Source: Podarcis melisellensis (Eukaryota). From it: 64,000 nt of DNA. Within the stretch, counting starts at the first letter, position 1; every line of letters begins with the position of its first letter. The notes under the pieces were generated by a model. That model saw nothing but the letters and a program-made list of their open reading frames with translations, searched no databases and was not told the DNA's origin. Location: the NCBI GenBank assembly GCA_964234715.1, contig OZ174291.1. The stretch is one strand, 5' to 3'. A program made the position numbers and the translations under genes. Below, one piece after another: positions 9,015 through 59,244 of the stretch.

Positions 9015-9062
9015 TAGTTCTAAAAAAGAATATTTTTGGCAGGCGCCAAAAAGAGTACAGTA

Positions 9063-9298
9063 TAGTGGTACCTCAGGTTAAGTACTTAATTCGTTCCAGA
9101 GGTCTGTTCTTAACCTGAAACTGTTCTTAACCTGAAGCACCACTTTAGCTAATGGGGCCTCTCGCTGCGCTGTCACCACGCGATTTGTGTTCTCATCCTG
9201 AAGCAAAGTTCTTAACCCGAGGTACTATTTCTGGGTTAGCAGAGTCTGTAACCTGCAGCGTCTGTAACCTGATGCATATGTAACCCGAGGTACCACTG
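9063..9298. mobile_element. Tc1/mariner-pogo type MITE
   Basis: TIR (c/t)agtggtacctc(a/g)ggtta with flanking TA dinucleotides; second copy at 52212-52437. Confidence 0.85.
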
Positions 9299-9754
9299 TA
9301 CAGCGAAGGGGCCTGCCCAATGCCAATGGGCAAGGAGTTCCAAACTGCAAGCGCTGCCACACTGAAGAATCACGTTTTTACAAATGTGGGATGGGAATTA
9401 CGTTCACAGTGGCAATTCTGCCACCACTGCAGCCACGAGAGAGAAAGGGCACCATGAGAGAGAAAGGGCAGGGCAGCTGAGGATTTCCCCAACATGGTGC
9501 CTTCCAGCTGTTTCGGACGGCAAACTCTCCGGAGCCAGGGGCGGTCCGAGGGGAGGCGGTCCGAGGGGGGGGAGGTCCTCTCCGGGTACCATTCCAAAGG
9601 GGGGGGTGACAAAATGCTGACCCTCGATTGGCGACACCCCCCAGGATGCAAGCCATGTCCCCTGGGACAAGCGCCACTTTGGGTACCGGAGCAGGTTGCT
9701 TTGCCTCTGTCGGCAGCCCCAGCCAACACGACTGTGGAGGGCCCTTGGTTCAGG

Positions 9755-26187: not shown

Positions 26188-28049
26188 TGTCAGGTGTGCG
26201 TGTAGCAGCCAGGCCCTGTGACCAATAGTACTTTGCAGGACTGGGGCCTTCCTAAGTTTGTTCTGGAGGCCCCTTGACTGTCCTCGGGTCCAGTATTGGA
26301 CCACTTCGACCGGATATCTCCAGCCGATGTGGACAGACTCCTCCGAGCTGGAAAGCCCACCACCTGTCCTCTTGACCCGTGCCCGTCTTGGCTGATTAGA
26401 GCGTGTCCAGACGAGGTGCGGGCCCTCCTGGGAGATATCATCAATTTGTCCCTTGGCACGGGGACATTCCCAGGGGAACTGAAGGAGGCAGTGGTGCGCC
26501 CGCTCTTAAAGAAAACATAATTAGATCTATCCAATTACCGCCCGGTTTCGAATCTTCCGTTCCTGGGTAAGGTGATTGAGAGAGCGGTTGCTGAACAGCT
26601 TGGTGGGTTTCTGGATGAAACATCGGCTCTGGATCCATTCCAGTCCGGCTTCCGCGCTGGTCATGGGACCGAGACGGCTCTGGTTGCCCTAACAGATGAT
26701 CTTCGTAGACAGCTGGATCGAGGCGGGTCGGGGCTGCTGATTCTTCTAGATCTGTCAGCAGCTTTCAACATGGTCGATCATGACCTTCTGGACCACCGCC
26801 CTGCCGACGTGGGGATCCAGGGCACAGTCCTTCAATGGCTGTGCTCGTTTCTCTCTGGTCGGGGACAGAGGGTGGCGCTTGGGGGGGAATTGTCATCGCG
26901 CCACTCCTTGGTGTGTGGAGTACCTCAGGGTGCGATACTCTCCCCGATGCTTTTCAACATCTTTATGCGCCCCCTCGCCCAGCTTGTTCGGAGTTTTGGG
27001 CTAGGTTGCCATCAGTATGCCGATGACACCCAACTCTATTTGTGGATGGATGGCCATCCTGACTCGGCCCCAGACACACTGACCAGATGTTTGGAAGCTG
27101 TGGCTGGATGGTTACGTGGGAGCCGGTTGAAGCTAAATCCTTCGAAGACAGAGGTCCTGTGGCTGGGACGGGGCGATATGGGATTGGGGGGGCAACTCCC
27201 ATCTCTTACGGGGGTGCAATTAGTGCCAGCACCGTCCGTTAAGAGTTTGGGTGTAATCTTCGACACCTCTCTTTCCATGGAGGCGCAGATTGCAGCTACA
27301 ACAAAGGCAGCATTTTTTCATCTCCGCCAAGCTAAGCAGTTGGCTCCTTACCTCTCTCGCCCTGACCTAGCCACTGTGATCCACACGATGGTCACCTCCA
27401 GACTGGATTATTGTAACTCGCTCTACGTGGGGCTGCCCTTGAGACTGACCCAGAAACTCCAGCGGGTGCAGAATGCTGCAGCGAGACTCCTTACGAGGTC
27501 TTCGCTGCGAGATCACATTCACCCGGTGCTGTACCAGCTGCACTGGCTCCCGGTGGAGTACAGGATCAGGTTTAAGGTGCTGGTTTAAACTTTTAAAGCC
27601 CTATACGGCCTAGGACCCTCGTACCTACGGGACCGCCTCTCCTGGTATGCCCCACAGAGAAATTTACGGTCTTCAAATAAAAACATCTTGAAGGTCCCAG
27701 GCCACAGAGAAGTTAGGCTGGCCTCAACGAGAGCCAGGGCTTTTTCGGCTGTGGCTCCGATCTGGTGGAACACTCTGTCACAAGAAACCAGGGCCCTGCG
27801 GGACTTGACATCTTTCCGCAAGGCCTGCAAGACAGAGCTGTTCCACCAGGCCTTTGGCAAGGGCACAGCCTGACTCCCTCCCTCGGCAATCTTCGCGGAG
27901 CTCTGGCCCAATGGCTGCCAGTGGCTTGAATTAATTGATTTTATAATGAATGATTTTAGAGTGTTGTTTATGCTGTACTTTTGTACTGTTTTATTGTTGT
28001 TAGCTGCCCTGAGCCCAGCTAAGGCTGGGGAGGGCGGGATATAAATAAA

Positions 28050-46559: not shown

Positions 46560-47350
46560 GCTGCGGTGGGGGAGGGGAGGGCCCAATGCGGTGGAAGGGA
46601 GAGCGTCAGTGACATCACGGGAGTCGGCCGTGACGTCAGGGAGACGCGGCTGTCACGTGCCTCCCAGCCAGCCTCCGCCGTTGCCTTCATCGCCGCCTAC
46701 CGTCGGTACTCACCGCCACCCGCTCTGTTCGCCGCCGCCGCGCTGCCTTCCCCGCTCGCTGCTTCTCGCCTCCTTGCCAGGCGCCGCCTGGCTCCGCTTC
46801 CTCACCGGGCCAGCCGCAACCCCGCCCATCTCGCTTGTGATTGGCCGCCTAAGTCACTCTCTGGCCTCCCATTGGCTGCCGCCGGAGACGCCTCTGTGGC
46901 CCTCCCCGCGACGGCCCCGCCCACTGTTTGACCCCCGCCTCCCTCCTGTCACTCACGCGCAGTTTCAAGCCTGGCGCCTTCGCGCCGCGTGCCACGCCTA
47001 CCCGGCCTCTGCGCGCCTCCTCATTGGCTGTCGTCCCGTCCGCCTCCTCGCGTTGCTCCTACTGGCTCTACGCCACGCCAGTCTCCTCCGCAAAGCGTCC
47101 CTCCGAACGTACTGCCTGCCCCGTTGATCCCAGACTTTCCATTGGTTGCGTCTCCGCCCTCTCGCCGCCACCTGGAGGCTCCTTCTCCTCCTATTGCTGG
47201 AATGCAAGCGCAGATTGACGAAAGAGGATGAACTTGAGCTGTGGTCGCTGATTGGCTGCCAGAGCTGAGGGAGGCGGAGCATAGTCCTCTAAGGGGGTTA
47301 TAGCGAAGAGTCGATGCACGTGACACTAGACGTGGCAGGTGCTGCACGTG
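46560..47350 (-). promoter_or_regulatory. CpG-island promoter driving leftward transcription; probably the pyruvate carboxylase (PC) distal promoter by synteny
   Basis: Very high CpG density. ATTGG (minus-strand CCAAT) at 46840, 46871, 47023, 47141 and 47251. GC boxes near 46820 and 46915. TGACGTCA at 46631-46638. CACGTG at 46654, 47317 and 47345. Gene identity is inferred only from mammalian order PC(-)/C11orf86(+)/SYT12(+). Confidence 0.75.
46714..46810 (-). other. Putative non-coding first exon (likely PC 5'-UTR exon 1); transcription start approximate
   Basis: Consensus minus-strand donor GCG|GTGAGTA (+ strand tactcac at 46707-46713), just downstream of the GC box and the CCAAT pair. Confidence 0.55.
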
Positions 47351-49022: not shown

Positions 49023-49049
49023 AGACCTAATTTCATGAGCCAGCATGTC

Positions 49050-49377
49050 ACCTCTTTGCTCTTTGCCCTGTGGTGTGTATCATCACAGGTCCATGCTGAC
49101 CTTTGCACCCACAGAGATATCACTGAGGAGTGGGGAGTTTTGTTCTCATTTTCTTGCTGCTGGGGGTGGGTGGGTCTGGAACCAGATAAGAGAGCTTGCA
49201 CAGAAAGTCCAAAGCGATGGGTTCGGGTTAGCAACAGGGAGCTCCTCCTCTCCCTCACCCGAGGGTGAATCACCCTGCAAAAGAGGAAGGAAAAAGCACA
49301 CGCTCACCAGACCAGCTTGCGACAGAACATCAGCTGTACCAGATTGGCAGCGCCGGCTCCAGAAGTCACACCCAGGC
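49050..49377 (+). promoter_or_regulatory. Putative proximal promoter/5' region of C11orf86 with DR1 (HNF4/PPAR-type), GATA and inverted CCAAT motifs
   Basis: TGACCTTTGCACC at 49097-49109, AGATAAG at 49184-49190, AAAGTCCAAAG at about 49204-49214, ATTGG at 49343-49347. Non-repetitive sequence between a CR1 fragment and the ATG. Confidence 0.5.
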
Positions 49378-49737
49378 ATGACCAACAGTAAGACGTTCCG
49401 GAGGGCCTGCTCCTTGCGGGGGTCCAAGTCCCCCAGCCTCCTGGATCCTGCCTCTGGGAGCTTATGGGACCACCTGGAGGAGGCAGATCCCACCAGGCGG
49501 TCTGTAGGCGCTGCCCTCGGGGGGCACGGCCTGGTCCCCAAGAACAAGGAAGAGGCCCAGCCGAAACCTGCCTGGAGCTGGGGGAGGAGAGCCACGAGTC
49601 TGAGGGTGCGGAAGGCCAGGGGAGAGGAGGCCGCGACGATGGGAGAAGCAGCCCACTCCCTTGGCCCTGGCGACGGGCAGATGCTCATCGGGGAGGCCCA
49701 TGGCAAAGCAGGCGGCAGGATGAAGAAACGTAAACAG
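49378..49737 (+). CDS. C11orf86: C11orf86/FACI orthologue, coding exon 1 (120 codons, phase-0 donor)
   Basis: ATG at 49378 (ggcATGa) lies in frame within ORF 49045..49827. Translation MTNSKTFRRACSLRGSKSPS...WGRRATSLR...SLGPGDGQMLI...KKRKQ matches remembered human C11orf86 blocks (LRSQSLR, RRALSLR, GSLGDTEQLI, RRYQQ). The exon ends at donor CAG|GTGAGA (49737/49738). Confidence 0.85.
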
Positions 49738-51646
49738 GTGAGAAAATGTGAGGAGTCGGCCTGGCACCAAGAGGCAGCATGGTCAGGTGGAAGCCCCATG
49801 GAAGGTGTCTTGCGCATGGACCTCTGAAACTTTGAGCCTGCACTACTCTGCTCCATTGGTTAGGGCAGAGGGCAAGGATTCAAAGGCCACATTCACACCC
49901 TACATTTAAAGCACCATGGTGCTGCTTTAAACCCTGGGAGCTATGGTTTGTTAAGGGTGCTATGAGCATAGGAGCTAACTCCTAGGGGCCAAGGGATCTT
50001 CAGGGGGGCATAAAATATTTGAGGGGGGTCGCTCCCTCCCCAGTTGATGGCCATTGCCATTCAAATCGTGTCATGTGACCAATTATGCGGGGCGTGGCTT
50101 ACCCCTTTTATGAAGATCACCTGCTCTGAGACCCCACAGCTAATTCTCCTCTGGCCTCCTGCTGGCCCAAGTAGGACCAATTCAACCAGCTAGCCCTGGG
50201 GATTATTTAATGCTTATTTCCCCTAAATTGATTTTTGAATTTTATTGTTGTTCATGTTTTTATACTGTATTTTATGCTGTTTTTATAATTAAGTGTTCTA
50301 AATTTGTTGCTAGCTGCTCTGAGCCCGGTTTTTGAACCGGGGAGGCGGGGTATAAATAAAAAAATATTATTATTATTACCCATCCCCCTAATATTCAAGT
50401 TGGCTGAGTCATTAGGAGACCCCTATTCCCCTCAATTCACAGGGACCTCTGGGAATTGTAGCTCTTTGAGGGGAAGAGTGTGTCCCCTAACAACTCGCTG
50501 CACCATCAGCCAACTACATCTCCCAGGATATATATTTTTGGGCGGGGAGTGGTTGGAATCAATGACTGATTAAAGTGCTTTTAATGGATGGTGTGAATGT
50601 GGCCTCAATGCATTTAGCACTGCCAACTAACAGTAAAACAAGCATATCAGCCCTTGTGCCTATGCCAGCAGCTTGATGTGCAGAAATCCATCAGGGGAAG
50701 CTTTCCGTGGCATGGGGTGAAAACTGTGTCGCACATTCCACCAGACTCTGTGCTGCTTTTGCACGCAAGGGCCCAGGGCCCAGTAGCTAACGGAGCTTTT
50801 TCCATCTTCCGGACTGGCCCACTAGAGGGCACTGCGCAAAAAGAAACCTGGGAACTCTTCTTGAGCTGCCTGCCTAGGAGAGTCAAGGTTGTATGCATAC
50901 TATAGTTTTAAAGAATTTTCAAAACCCTACCTTCTCTCAAAGAATTCTGGGCCCTGTAGTTCTACCCCTCACAGAATTACAGTTTCCAGCAACGCTTAAG
51001 GAACTACAGCGCCCATAATTCTTTGAGTGAAAGAATGTGTTTTGAACGTGGTTTAAAGGCATAGTGTGTAAACAGCCAGAAAAGCACAGATTCAATAAGT
51101 GTTACTCTCCTCCTGTGCCTCCTCTTTGTCCCTGGGAAAACCCACTCCATACTGAAACAGAGCAAATTGCAGTCCACAGAAAAACCAATTGACATTTGTT
51201 CTGTTTCAGTGGTAAACAGTGGGTTTTCCAGCTGAAATGTGGCATGACAAATGGAAGTCTGGGTGAATCCTAACATAGTCTGGTGTTTGAAAGCTTCAGG
51301 CTCTTAACATCCCTTATTTCTGAGGGTCCTGGTGTATCAAGGCACAAGCCAAGAGCCTCACCTGGGCAGTGATTTTGCCAAACCACTCTGCGAACATTTT
51401 CCAGCTAAGGAACAGGGTAAATGTGGTAATGAATATTTTTTATTTATTTAAGAACCATTTTCCAGAAAGAAAAATGTTGCTGTCCTCCTCCGGGAGCCAC
51501 TGTCCTCCCTGAACAAGCTAATTCCAGCAGAGCAAGATTGATACCGCCTCGTATCTGGCTGCCCAATGGAGGGCTAGATAACATATCCAGATTTGAAGAC
51601 CTCCAGACCCTCTAACTCTCCTTCTTTGCTCCCTGCCCCTCCGCAG

Positions 51647-51769
51647 CAGGTAAATCGTGCTCTTCGGGAAAGCTGGGAGACCTTCCTGACCAACGTGTAC
51701 AGCTTAACATTGAGCCGCCCGACCAGCAGACCCACCGCTGATGAAGCCCAGGCGGTGGGGACACCGTGA
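51647..51769 (+). CDS. C11orf86: C11orf86/FACI orthologue, coding exon 2 (QVNRALRESWETFLTNVYSLTLSRPTSRPTADEAQAVGTP*)
   Basis: Branch-like CTAAC at 51612-51616, a pyrimidine tract, and CAGCAG acceptor at 51644-51649. The peptide resembles the human C-terminus QVRRRWESFVAIFPSVTLSQPASP. Stop TGA at 51767-51769. Too short to appear in the ORF track. Confidence 0.85.
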   Translation, partial: QVNRALRESWETFLTNVYSLTLSRPTSRPTADEAQAVGTP

Positions 51770-52437: not shown

Positions 52438-52909
52438 TAGCGAAAACCTGTTCTCTGATGTATATACATACCTTTCCACTCCCTGAAAAATTCCTAGGGA
52501 CCCCCCTTCTCCCCACCCTCCAAAGAGTCCCACAATTGTCCTCCTTTCTAGTTTTCTGGCCACTTTCCACCCTGACACTCCTTGGCACGGGAACATGCCT
52601 GGCAGCTGTCCACCAGACATCTCAAACCAGTTGCCTCCTCTCCTGGCTTGGATTCTGCACCTGCCATGTCTTGCATCACGTTAGCTAATTCAGATAGATA
52701 GCAAATACCTTTGCCTCCTGGGGAGTGAAGGGTTTGCGGAAGGAGACATACAACGGGATATGAACACACCCTGTGGTGACCCAAAGTGTTGCTGAAAGCC
52801 AATAAACCCAGACCCCACCTCTGCTTGGTCTCTTCTAAAACATTCCTCCTTTTTAGGCCTTGGGTATGTTCTTGTGGAAAGGTGGGGTGTATAAATGTAA
52901 TTGATAATA

Positions 52910-54374: not shown

Positions 54375-56654
54375 CACTGGTGGGTGGAGAACTGCAACAC
54401 AAAATTCAGAGGGCAGCTGCATTTTAGCTCTCATATTGATTTTGGAACTGCAAAGGGTTCACATTGACGTGTGGTCGGTTTGCAACAAGATGCAAACCCA
54501 ACTCATTCCCCAATCCTTCAGTGCATGTCATGTCGGGTGGGGGTGGGGAACCGCCGGATACGGGATGCTCTGTTGCTTGGAGGAAAAAGGAAGATGCCAG
54601 TCACCTAAGTGTCCCTTATAGACCTGCCTTTCACTGGAGTTGTGGTGTCATCTTTTCCAAAAGGGAGTAGCAAGTGGCTGACATGCCAAAAGGCCACCCT
54701 GTGGAAGTTGGTCCTCTGTCTTGAGCATGAGAATGTGGTGGCTACGTGGCGCTTAGCAGGATCTCAGTAAAAAGATGAGAGCCCCCTGCCACCCGCCTCT
54801 CCATCCAGGCCTTTGTCCAAGCCAATCATCTCGCCATATCAGGCGCTCCTTTCAGCTGGCTTTGAAAGCCCCATTCAGCTCCAGGCAGTAGGATGGGCCC
54901 TAAACCATCTGCGGCTTGGGCAGAGGGGACAACTGCGCTAAGCTGGCTGCCTTGGAGTGAGAGATGCCAGGGAGCGGGGTGGGGTTGGGGGCCAGGGTTT
55001 TGGAATGCAAAGGCTGCTTTAATAATACAAGAGGCTTCTCAAAGCCCCCAAGTCACACGCTGGCGACCCCATGACCGCAGAGAAGCCAGAGCATCGTGTA
55101 AGGAAGCCTCGCTTTTGCCCACTGAAGGGAGACTTGCAGCATTGTTCGGAGTGAGGTCCCAGATGTGCTGCAAGTCACGACTCTCGATTCGGGCATGAGC
55201 TCTGAGGGTGGATTTATGAGCAGAGAGAGGCAGAGTCTTTCTTGCTGTAGCGCCTCAGTTGGGCCCGTTCTATTATTTCACAGGGGTGAGGGCCACCCTA
55301 AGACATTTTGCCGCCTGAGGCAAAGGGCAATGTGGGGTTCCCCTCTCCGCTCCAGGCTCAGGAGTTGACGGGACTGGCTGTGGAATATTAGGTCAACACT
55401 CAAGGAAACATCCTCCACTGTAGGGCGAGGTATGTGACATACGGGCACCTCACTGCTACCCCTCAGCATCTGCTGCCTGAGGCAGCTACCTTACTCTGCC
55501 TAATATAAGGGCTGGCCCTGCAGGGGATGGAAACATGTTTGTACCATCCCTATCCTCACATTAATAATTATTACAATATTGGGAGGGGGAGGGAGCAGGG
55601 CCAGTCCTACCCTTAGGCCAAGTGAGGAACTTGCCTCAGACAGTGGATGCTGCAAGTCAAGGAAAGCATCCGTGCACATTACTGGAAAACTGCATTGCAA
55701 AAATTCAGAGAATGCAAATTTCAAAGGGTAGCCATGCTTTGGTTCTCGTATTGTTTCAAGAAAGTGCAAATTCAGTTGCTTCAGCTTCAAATGCACATTG
55801 AACCTGCATTTCACCCCCATCCATGACCAGCCATCACCAACTTGGTGCCCTCCAGATATATTCTTGGGCTACAACTCCCACCAGTCTCCACCAGCACAGT
55901 CTAGGAGTTGCCAGTCCTTAGTTCCCAGGCTCTGCCTTCCAGGAATCTGGTAACCAAACCCAGAGCAGAGGAGGTGTCCAGCCAGCCTGGTGGCTTCCTT
56001 TGCAGGGCCTCTCGCGTGGTCTACCAGCATGAGAATTGGGGTCCCTGGGTAGCAGCCTTACACTGCTGGTGCAACTGCTCTGCTCTGAACAGGGACCAGA
56101 TGCCAACTGGCCAGGCAAGAAGCATTTGGTACTAATTGTGGTTTTGAGCCTTCCTTGCTGACTTTGCAGTTCTGCTCTGCCTCTCCGGCTTCAGGCGTCT
56201 CACCGCAAGAACAGCCCCCCCTGCAAGTGAGCTCATGTGCTAAACGCAGGCCCTGGTGAGGTCAGGCTGGGGTTGGCTTGGGAGGTCTCCAGGTTGCTGT
56301 GGAGAGAATCAGAGGCTGATTTGGGAGGAGGAGGAGGAAGAGGAAGATGCCACGTCTATGTGGCCAGGCCTCTGCTCTTGGTCGGTTCTGCTCTTGTGTT
56401 TTGCATGCATTTGGATTCCAAAGCCTTCGTGGTCACAGAGACAGTATGGTATAGTTAGAGTGTCAGACAAGGACCTGGAAGAGACCTGGGTTCGAATCCC
56501 CACATGGACATAAAGCTCATGGGGTGACCTAGGGCCCATCGCTGCCTCTCAGCCTCAGCTACCTCACACGGTTGTAGTGGGGATTAAATGGGGGGGGGGG
56601 GACCATGTAAGCCACTTTCAGGTCCCTGAAGAAAATGCAATAAACTGGTTGACA

Positions 56655-57174: not shown

Positions 57175-59244
57175 GATAGGCCATGTTACCCTTTGGTTCA
57201 GAAATAAATTCTCTTAGAGCATTTTTGGATGCATGTTTACTGTGAGATTGGTGCTCCTTCAGCTAGCAAGGTTTTCTATAGAGTCCATCCAATGTCAGCA
57301 TCAACTTTTAATATACATTTGTTAATTAATATTCCACTCTTCCTCCCAAATGAACCCCATTGCACGACCCCTCCTTTCCACTCAATTGGCTGTCATTCCA
57401 TCAGAATTTAGACTGTAATCTCTTGGGAGGCAGAAATCTGCCTGTGCACTTCAATTGCTTTGTAGAAGGCCAGGTACTTTCATCTCACCTCAGAAAGGAT
57501 ATTGTGGAGTTGAGGAAAGTTCAGGCTAATTCTACCACCAGAGCTACAGGTTAAGGGGGAATTTAATCCAGCCCCTGTGGCAGTTTATTTCCTGGGGTAA
57601 AATCCTAAAAACACCTCAACAGCTTCAATCCTAAAAAAAGGTCAACAACTTTGGTTGGCCCTCTGGTCAGTCCCCAAGGCCCTTCACTTCACCAAATCTG
57701 GCCCTCTTTGAAAAAAGTTTGGACACCACTGGGTTAAGGTGTTCCCTAGGCTGGGAAGAGTTCCTCAGCTCTGAGGCGTCACTCGTTCCCCAGGACACAT
57801 CCTGGAAGGACTAAAAAATGCTTCTGGGTCAAGCTGGGATTTTGCTGGAGTAAAACAGCATCCGCTCTGCTGAATGCCCAGCTTCACTACAGCCTAGCGC
57901 TGACACTTCATTTTGCTAAAATTTCAAAACTCTGTTGAATTTGGGAGGGCCTTCTGTATTGAATGTTGTGGGAGGGCAGAAGAAGACCCATCGATATTTT
58001 CTCAAGGGCAAATCTGCACTTCTCTAATCTTGACTTTGACACCGATGGCTGTGGCAGGCAGGCGAAGTTCCACCCCAGAGCTGGCTGCAATTTAGCACCA
58101 TCCTGCAAAGTGGAAACACAACATTAAGAATGGAAGCGTTTAAGAGTTGTAATGAACTGCAGAGGCAGCCCGAGAGGCAGTTGATTTCTCCGGATGAGTA
58201 ATGAAGGCCGGCTTTTGAATTTTTTTCCGTGTTGGGAAGAGAGCCTGGTGCTGGGCATCAGGGAGGAAGCTGCCAAAAGGGACTTTGTGGAATTGGAAAG
58301 ATTTGTGAACACGTCTGAGCCATGGCGGGTTCCTCCTCCTCCTCCCCCCTTTCTTTTGAGGGTTGCAAAAAGAATTAAGTCATTTCTGCTGTCCCAAAAA
58401 AGAAAAGAAAAAGCTTGGACAGGATCAGGGAAGATTTACAGTAAAATGAATCATCTGGAGATCTGTACCTGGCATTACACAGCACCTCCTTGTAAAGCCA
58501 CATTTTGAAGAATAGGAATGCACTCCCAGTCTGCTCATTTTAATTGGGGAGAGCACCCCCCACCAAAAAAAAAAAAAATTAACCTTGGGGAGGGTTAAAA
58601 AAAATCTTCTTAATGGGCAGTTTCTTGCTCCCCTGAACCCCACACCCCAATTATGGCTGCGCAATTATTTTAAACATTTTTAATACAAAAGTAAAACTCC
58701 CCCCAGGAAATAAAACTTGGGTTAGAAAGAGCAAGGCTACCTTTTGTTGTGGGTCAGAGGGTGGGGTCTCATCTTTCAGTTCAGGCCTGGGAGAGGAGAA
58801 CGTGGCTTTCCATGGGAGCCAGCAGGCTGGGAGAGGGTGGGCCTCTGTGGGTCTTTCACAGGCAGCAGAATCAGACGGTGCAAGGCTGGGGGCTGCAGAA
58901 AATGCTTCTGAATCCCAGTTGCTGGAAGCCATGGGGGGGGGGGGAGAAGGCTCTGGTCTTCAGGTCCTGCTTGGGATCTTCCCACAGGCATCTGAGTGAG
59001 CACGGTGAGAACAGGATGCTGGACCAGACGAGCCACTGGCCTGATCCAGAAGGGCTCTTCCTGGATAGCTTGGTTGGTTAGAGTGTGGTGTTGATAACAT
59101 CAAGGTTGCTGGTTTAATCCACATATGGGACAACTGCATATTCCTGCATTGCAGAGAGTTGGACTTGATGATGCTAAGGGTCCCTTCCACCTCTATGATT
59201 CTGTTTCGCATGTCCTTATAAAGCTGCAGTCTTGGAGTCTAATC

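Follow-up and report, generated by a model that had tools for sequence, protein, structure and literature searches.

The stretch of DNA analysed here is a 64,000-nucleotide (nt) piece of contig OZ174291.1 from the lizard Podarcis melisellensis, which at its full length is called the window, and the subject of this report is a small gene on its plus strand that encodes a lizard FACI (C11orf86) protein with a probability of about 90%. Read directly from the sequence, exon 1 opens with an ATG at 49378–49380 and remains open for 120 codons, up to 49737. Exon 2 begins at 51647 and contributes 40 codons followed by a TGA at 51767–51769, and the two exons together specify a product of 160 amino acids. 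The donor at 49737/49738 (CAG/GTGAGA) is strong, the acceptor at 51646/51647 consists of a polypyrimidine tract and then ccgcag/CAG, and the number of N positions across the gene region is zero. On the grounds given below, we regard the stretch as an intact two-exon FACI gene. The original prediction had proposed the same two exons and had called the gene hidden; since both exons sit in listed open reading frames (ORFs; 49045..49827 and 51593..51769), this description fits the spliced product only.

The splice from 49737 to 51647, which had been predicted to give 160 amino acids, was borne out: its sites are canonical, and the junction is present in annotated proteins of P. lilfordi, P. muralis, gecko, turtle and Sceloporus. 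The P. lilfordi protein P0006, of 73 amino acids, matches the window model at 72 of 73 residues from M87 to the end, and its junction, KRKQ/QVNRAL, is exactly the proposed one; the same junction was found in P0007 (P. muralis LOC114587203) and in P0005 (the gecko Paroedura picta). The intron lies at the same codon, in phase 0 and with a GT donor, in P. muralis, the turtle Chelonia mydas and the iguanian Sceloporus undulatus. When the translated turtle exons were compared with the window, exon 1 matched 49312–49743 (E = 1.5e-14) and exon 2 matched 51644–51721 (E = 4e-9), which far exceeds what would be expected of chance similarity. A word search with the exon 1 protein returned squamate proteins only.

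The P. muralis locus (L001) is 92–94% identical to the window at the DNA level, which marks the two as close lacertid relatives. Across the core coding sequence, the two species differ by 8 synonymous and 8 non-synonymous changes, giving a ratio of non-synonymous to synonymous change (pN/pS) of 0.32; calculated by exon, the ratio is 0.45 for exon 1 and 0.11 for exon 2. Purifying selection is suggested to act on this core.

The acceptor is of the tandem NAGNAG type, cag/cag followed by GT, and this arrangement is conserved from the turtle to the lizards (the window and loci L001, L002 and L003). Use of the second AG, with the exon starting at 51650, gives a protein with one Gln fewer and keeps the frame. 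Splicing to this second AG would account for the python and Hemicordylus models, from which the junction Gln is missing.

The family of the protein was assigned with profiles of gecko and lacertid sequences (A2) and of reptile sequences (A3), searched against a database of 5.8 billion proteins. Profile A2 found proteins named 'C11orf86 homolog' in Pangshura tecta (E = 3.5e-15), Chelonia mydas (E = 6.9e-13) and Sceloporus (E = 1.2e-8), and the annotated or published reptile C11orf86 homologs matched with E-values of 1e-8 to 1e-22, the lowest being that of Hemicordylus capensis P0012 (1e-22). Profile A3 reached C11orf86 homologs of mammals, with a best E-value of 1.4e-4, as well as the fish protein sb:cb1058, with E-values as low as 5e-10; none of its matches among the 5.8 billion proteins is named C1orf115. 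An hhalign comparison of a squamate-only profile with a profile of seven non-human mammals gave a probability of 96% and an E-value of 4.6e-9 over 79 columns, which span the motifs referred to below as C, D and E. The turtle proteins pass the Pfam model DUF4633 (PF15464) over nearly its full length, with 43.8 and 35.2 bits against a cut-off of 27. The profile searches and hhalign thus agree in identifying the protein as a reptilian orthologue of C11orf86/FACI, as had been proposed.

The definitions of motifs A–E were taken from the literature (PMC8938335, PMC10114425, PMC12302249), and the features of the locus are collected in Table 1. Every motif quoted in the original prediction, namely the dileucine, the two RxxS[LF]R motifs, WDHL and the helix, was found in its place. 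Motifs A-B-C-D-E are collinear in 23/23 sequences examined and in the window protein. Motif D, DGQMLI, aligns to mammalian DTEQLI, and the LTLSRP tail aligns to mammalian VTLSRP. The helix RESWETFLTNVYSLTLSRP is encoded by exon 2. An AlphaFold2 prediction, based on nine aligned sequences, was made for the P. muralis orthologue (95% identity to the window model). In this model residues 1–100 are disordered, with a predicted local distance difference test (pLDDT) score of ~40–55, and a single helix begins at residue 102 and runs to 142 (pLDDT 84–96). A hydrophobic moment of 0.52 was calculated for the helix, and a net charge of +6 for the region of motif E.

Table 1. Features of the FACI locus in the window (positions in nt; UTR, untranslated region).
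Feature	Position	Strand	Comment
In-frame open stretch, 111 codons	49045..49377	+	Included in the 271-residue P. muralis model; probably promoter or 5' UTR
HNF4-like element GAAAGTCCA	49203..49211	+	175 nt 5' of the ATG; proximal-promoter lead
Coding exon 1	49378..49737	+	Disordered N-terminal region, motifs A–D and polybasic start of motif E
Motif A, RACSLR, Ser12	49402..49419	+	Published pattern R-x-x-S-[LF]-R
Motif B position, WDHLEE, residues 30–35	49465..49482	+	Published as Y-x-x-L; Tyr in other reptiles and mammals
Motif C, RATSLR, Ser74	49588..49605	+	Second R-x-x-S-[LF]-R; aligns with mammalian RRALSLR (hhalign)
Motif D, DGQMLI, residues 99–104	49672..49689	+	Acidic dileucine [DE]xxxL[LI] where the predicted helix begins
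Motif E, exon 1 part, polybasic GRMKKRKQ	49714..49737	+	Residues 113 onward
Intron, 1909 nt, GT..AG, phase 0	49738..51646	+	Position kept in P. muralis, Chelonia mydas and Sceloporus undulatus
Tandem NAGNAG acceptor cag/cag	51644..51649	+	cagcag identical at all four loci compared
Coding exon 2, 40 codons + TGA	51647..51769	+	Amphipathic helix, hydrophobic LTLSRP tail (motif E), short disordered tail
Motif E, exon 2 part, QVNRALRESWETFLTNVYSLTLSRP	exon 2	+	Basic amphipathic helix and hydrophobic tail
First plus-strand AATAAA past the stop, possible poly(A) signal	52801..52806	+	Consensus match only; 3' UTR would be ~1 kb

Several observations weigh against the assignment. When each exon was searched separately, Pfam gave no match at E ≤ 10, and the complete P. 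muralis protein P0007 stayed below the DUF4633 cut-off (18.7 bits vs 27), as did P. lilfordi P0006 (15.7 bits) and Sceloporus P0016 (15.5 bits), the last of which carries the NCBI name 'C11orf86 homolog'. Because this named Sceloporus homolog fails too, while the turtles pass, the Pfam miss is attributed to a model that scores squamates under its cut-off and not to non-membership. The expected similarity to the C11orf86 family was therefore obtained in part: the profile searches detect it, but Pfam at its curated cut-off is not reached in squamates. Some squamate relatives score similarly on RDD1 (C1orf115) and on DUF4633. An ESM Atlas query with the gecko orthologue returned an unnamed top cluster followed by RDD1 clusters at ranks 2–3 (0.84 and 0.83), and for this reason the Atlas is uninformative on the family. 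Motif B, which reads WDHL in the window and P. muralis, is without its tyrosine. The 64,000-nt window revealed no neighbouring gene, and the cystatin neighbour of the turtle gene has no match there. Splicing and expression, finally, are suggested by conservation and by the annotations of other species.

The RDD1 scores could mean that the protein is a lizard member of the C1orf115/RDD1 sister family, which shares the C-terminal helix, and not FACI. Weak Pfam E-values for RDD1 are similar or better in some relatives (P0005, 7e-4; P0016, 1.2e-4; P0006, 0.026), and the second and third Atlas clusters point in the same direction. However, the RDD1 matches are confined to the helix (profile positions ~31–75), and the curated cut-off of this model (PF15828) is missed, squamates reaching ≤ 22.7 bits over the helix only. 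FACI and C1orf115 have a C-terminal amphipathic helix in common (PMC11757849), which accounts for the double signal in Pfam and in the Atlas. C1orf115 has an ExxxIL at its N-terminus and neither motif A nor motif C (PMC11757849), whereas the two RxxSLR motifs are present in the window protein, whose sole [DE]xxxL[LI] lies at residue 99, beside the helix. In addition, P. muralis P0007 matches DUF4633 only, with no match to RDD1, the names returned by the profile searches are C11orf86 and sb:cb1058 only, and the hhalign alignment to mammalian FACI extends over motifs C-D-E. Membership of the sister family is thus extremely improbable. A silent or decaying relic, in which an intact ORF is no longer expressed or functional, is conceivable in view of the reported loss of FACI in birds and crocodiles, and it would fit the missing tyrosine of motif B, the divergence of the squamate sequences below the Pfam cut-off and the skink-like sequence P0013, which is short of several motif residues. 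Yet both exons are open, the splice sites are canonical and conserved, pN/pS is low overall and lowest in exon 2, and motifs A, C, D and E are intact, all of which makes a relic very unlikely.

A further alternative to the FACI gene as delimited here concerns its 5' end. The frame is open from an in-frame ATG at 49045 in both the window and P. muralis, and the true product could be a protein of ~271 amino acids of which the C-terminal 160 residues only are FACI-like. This ATG has a purine at -3, and an open upstream extension is also present in a gecko contig (P0002). On the other hand, the extension differs between the two Podarcis species by 12 non-synonymous and 1 synonymous changes (pN/pS 3.66), compared with eight of each kind in the core (p = 0.02 by Fisher's test), and all proteins from turtles, mammals, geckos, skinks, the python and Sceloporus begin at the M-T-N-S / M-A-H-G position. 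DNA similarity to Sceloporus starts only at 49377. The gecko upstream peptide, VNHPAKGEGK, corresponds to another frame of the window (ORF 49265..49381), and the upstream frame is therefore not conserved. A conserved HNF4-like element at -175 suggests, moreover, that a promoter lies inside the supposed extension. The longer product is accordingly unlikely, the start codon of the FACI gene is very probably 49378, and the 271-residue P. muralis model LOC114587203 is probably over-extended, starting 111 codons too early. In P. muralis, the extension (L001 10001–10333; window 49045–49377) evolves like non-coding DNA.

The window and P. muralis share the 9-mer GAAAGTCCA at -175, and Sceloporus has it one position closer to the ATG (-174), between flanks that cannot be aligned. 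Mammalian FACI, a gene of liver and intestine that responds to CREB-H, is also regulated by HNF4-alpha (PMC8938335), and the element may be a conserved proximal promoter site that fits this reported control.

Motif B was examined with respect to the proposal that its tyrosine is dispensable. The pattern Y-x-x-L-E-E is kept in 13/16 reptile sequences, and Tyr is present in 7/7 mammals examined; the mammalian form YGKL, which the original prediction had given for the human protein, was found in 6/7 non-human mammals. The sequences that keep Tyr comprise those of all geckos, the python, skinks, Hemicordylus, Sceloporus, both turtles and the seven mammals. Only the window and P. muralis have Trp, and one sequence (P0013) has Cys. 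Because P. muralis has Trp too, the residue is not an assembly error. Deletion of YxxL has been reported to weaken but not to abolish coated-pit localisation (PMC10114425), and to this extent the proposal has something in its favour; as a general statement it goes too far, since the loss of Tyr is limited to one genus. We regard the Trp as a lineage variant that is no bar to orthology, because orthology rests on descent and the YxxL deletion mutant still reaches the pits. Motif B has been stated to be conserved in all orthologues (PMC10114425), a published universality to which the Podarcis Trp, as read from the two genomes, is an exception.

The L-E-E flank of motif B is still conserved in the Trp form. 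The mu2 subunit of AP2 requires the Tyr of a Yxx-phi signal. With Trp in place of Tyr, Podarcis FACI probably lacks a canonical Yxx-phi contact with AP2 mu2. Since mu2 needs Tyr while Podarcis has Trp and keeps L-E-E, the conserved role of motif B is perhaps not that of a mu2 sorting signal: an aromatic-x-x-Leu-acidic pattern could be read by another partner, for instance by a pocket of the ATG8/LC3-interacting region (LIR) type or of the appendage type, or Podarcis could have lost a secondary AP2 contact. This is a tentative suggestion, and we consider it rather doubtful. The skink-like sequence P0013, which comes from a Logan contig, has Cys at the motif B Tyr, RRAANLR with Asn for the Ser of motif C, and, in motif A, Gln at position -3. 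This copy may be divergent or in decay, and its Cys would be consistent with mutation from Tyr to Trp by way of Cys.

A mechanism can be proposed by analogy with the mammalian proteins. Binding to AP2, binding to phosphatidylinositol 4,5-bisphosphate (PI(4,5)P2), phosphorylation by protein kinase C (PKC)-alpha and binding to 14-3-3 are known only for mouse and human FACI (PMC8938335, PMC10114425, PMC12302249). In mammals, motif D is the AP2-binding site (PMC10114425), and motif A is a PKC-alpha phosphosite that binds 14-3-3 once phosphorylated (PMC12302249). In the lizard protein, motif E, with its basic amphipathic helix and LTLSRP tail, would anchor the protein on the PI(4,5)P2-rich inner leaflet of the membrane, and the adjacent motif D, DGQMLI, would bring it into clathrin-coated pits by binding AP2. 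A conventional PKC, by phosphorylating Ser12 of motif A and Ser74 of motif C, would then detach the protein from AP2, and 14-3-3 could bind the motifs in their phosphorylated form. Each of these biochemical steps, as well as expression in liver and gut, is inferred from homology with mammalian FACI.

The occurrence of the gene in a lizard is in line with the literature. FACI homologs were stated to exist in lizards and turtles in 2022 (PMC8938335). In 2025, the FACI proteins of Hemicordylus capensis and Pogona vitticeps were aligned, 228 orthologues were counted in NCBI Gene, and motifs A and C were described as conserved from mammals to reptiles (PMC12302249); Hemicordylus and Pogona are treated as carrying FACI orthologues in another report also (PMC11757849). 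The gene family, its occurrence in lizards and the five motifs with their functions have thus been published (2022–2025), and the gene in the window is an ordinary orthologue. The suggestion that the dileucine, the phospho-motifs and the helix form a deeply conserved core is correct in so far as motifs A, C, D and E are present in order, but it repeats the published motif map.

Four points may be new, namely the Tyr-to-Trp variant, a P. muralis model that probably begins too far upstream, the inability of DUF4633 to recognise squamate members and a python FACI. With respect to the last, FACI has been stated to be absent in snakes (PMC8938335). Protein P0009 of the olive python Liasis olivaceus (Pythonidae) has 156 amino acids and the five FACI motifs, and it matches the lizard profile with an E-value of 3.4e-30. 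To judge from its sequence, it is a complete FACI, contrary to that statement. As a practical result, the Podarcis and gecko genes listed as 'uncharacterized' can be named as FACI/C11orf86 homologs, and the Tyr-to-Trp change offers a natural variant for probing the role of motif B; past annotation, the locus is of little importance.

With regard to the surroundings of the gene, no other gene is called within 10 kb of FACI in P. muralis or Sceloporus. In Chelonia mydas, a cystatin-domain gene is located on the minus strand ~4.5 kb downstream of FACI (L002 18344–23796), and an older turtle annotation, P0017, fuses the FACI and cystatin genes. An antisense ORF of 236 amino acids (49146..49856) was considered as coding and dismissed because the turtle match is far weaker on the minus strand (E = 9e-5) than on the plus strand (E = 1.5e-14). 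Three blocks shared with Sceloporus at 69–85% identity (46787–46986, 56093–56176 and 58249–58319) give matches on both strands and in several frames; for this reason they were rejected as exons, and they probably represent conserved elements that do not code for protein. The first of these blocks lies within a GC-rich stretch. The P. muralis intron contains ~1.5 kb just 5' of exon 2 (L001 12778–14323) that is absent from the window, and also a 250-nt repeat (L001 11881–12133) that matches window positions 9056–9300; both extra pieces are probably derived from transposon insertions. Elsewhere in the window, a plus-strand ORF of 338 amino acids at 26572–27588 resembles a fragment of a long interspersed nuclear element (LINE) reverse transcriptase, and an (AT)-rich simple repeat coding for poly-I is found near it on the opposite strand.

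Among the known systems, C1orf115/RDD1 resembles the window protein in its disordered N-terminus, its dileucine-type AP2 motif and its basic amphipathic, phosphoinositide-binding helix. In C1orf115 the amphipathic helix is followed by a hydrophobic helix (PMC11757849), and the window protein is without the distinguishing traits of C1orf115. The fish protein sb:cb1058, which has been named the ancestral form of FACI (PMC8938335), is similar in its C-terminal motif D/E region (E = 5e-10 to 1e-6 against the reptile profile); it differs in its length of ~210–270 amino acids, and it aligns over ~13–21% of the query.

Mammalian FACI shares with the window protein its small size, the disordered N-terminus, one basic amphipathic helix at the C-terminus with [VL]TLSRP as its end, and motifs A, C, D and E in identical order. 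The mammalian proteins are shorter (~114–125 amino acids vs 160 in the lizard). In agreement with the longer linker that had been predicted, the added length lies mainly between motifs A and B (18 residues in the lizard vs 8 in mammals) and between motifs B and C (44 vs 20). An extended tail had been predicted as well; the lizard protein has 15 residues past LSRP, compared with ~11 in mammals, so that the tail is longer by about four residues and the extension is marginal. The lizard helix has four residues more than the mammalian one (QVNRALRESW vs QQVRRRW), motif B reads WDHL where mammals have YGKL, and motif D reads DGQMLI where they have DTEQLI.

The closest correspondence is with the annotated or published homologs of other reptiles (Chelonia mydas, Pangshura tecta, Sceloporus undulatus, Hemicordylus capensis and Pogona vitticeps). 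Podarcis and gecko proteins carry only the database labels 'uncharacterized' or 'hypothetical'. The other reptile homologs have the same two exons, the same intron phase and position and the same cagcag acceptor, and they share all five motif positions with the window protein, with Tyr at motif B in place of the Trp of the window and P. muralis.

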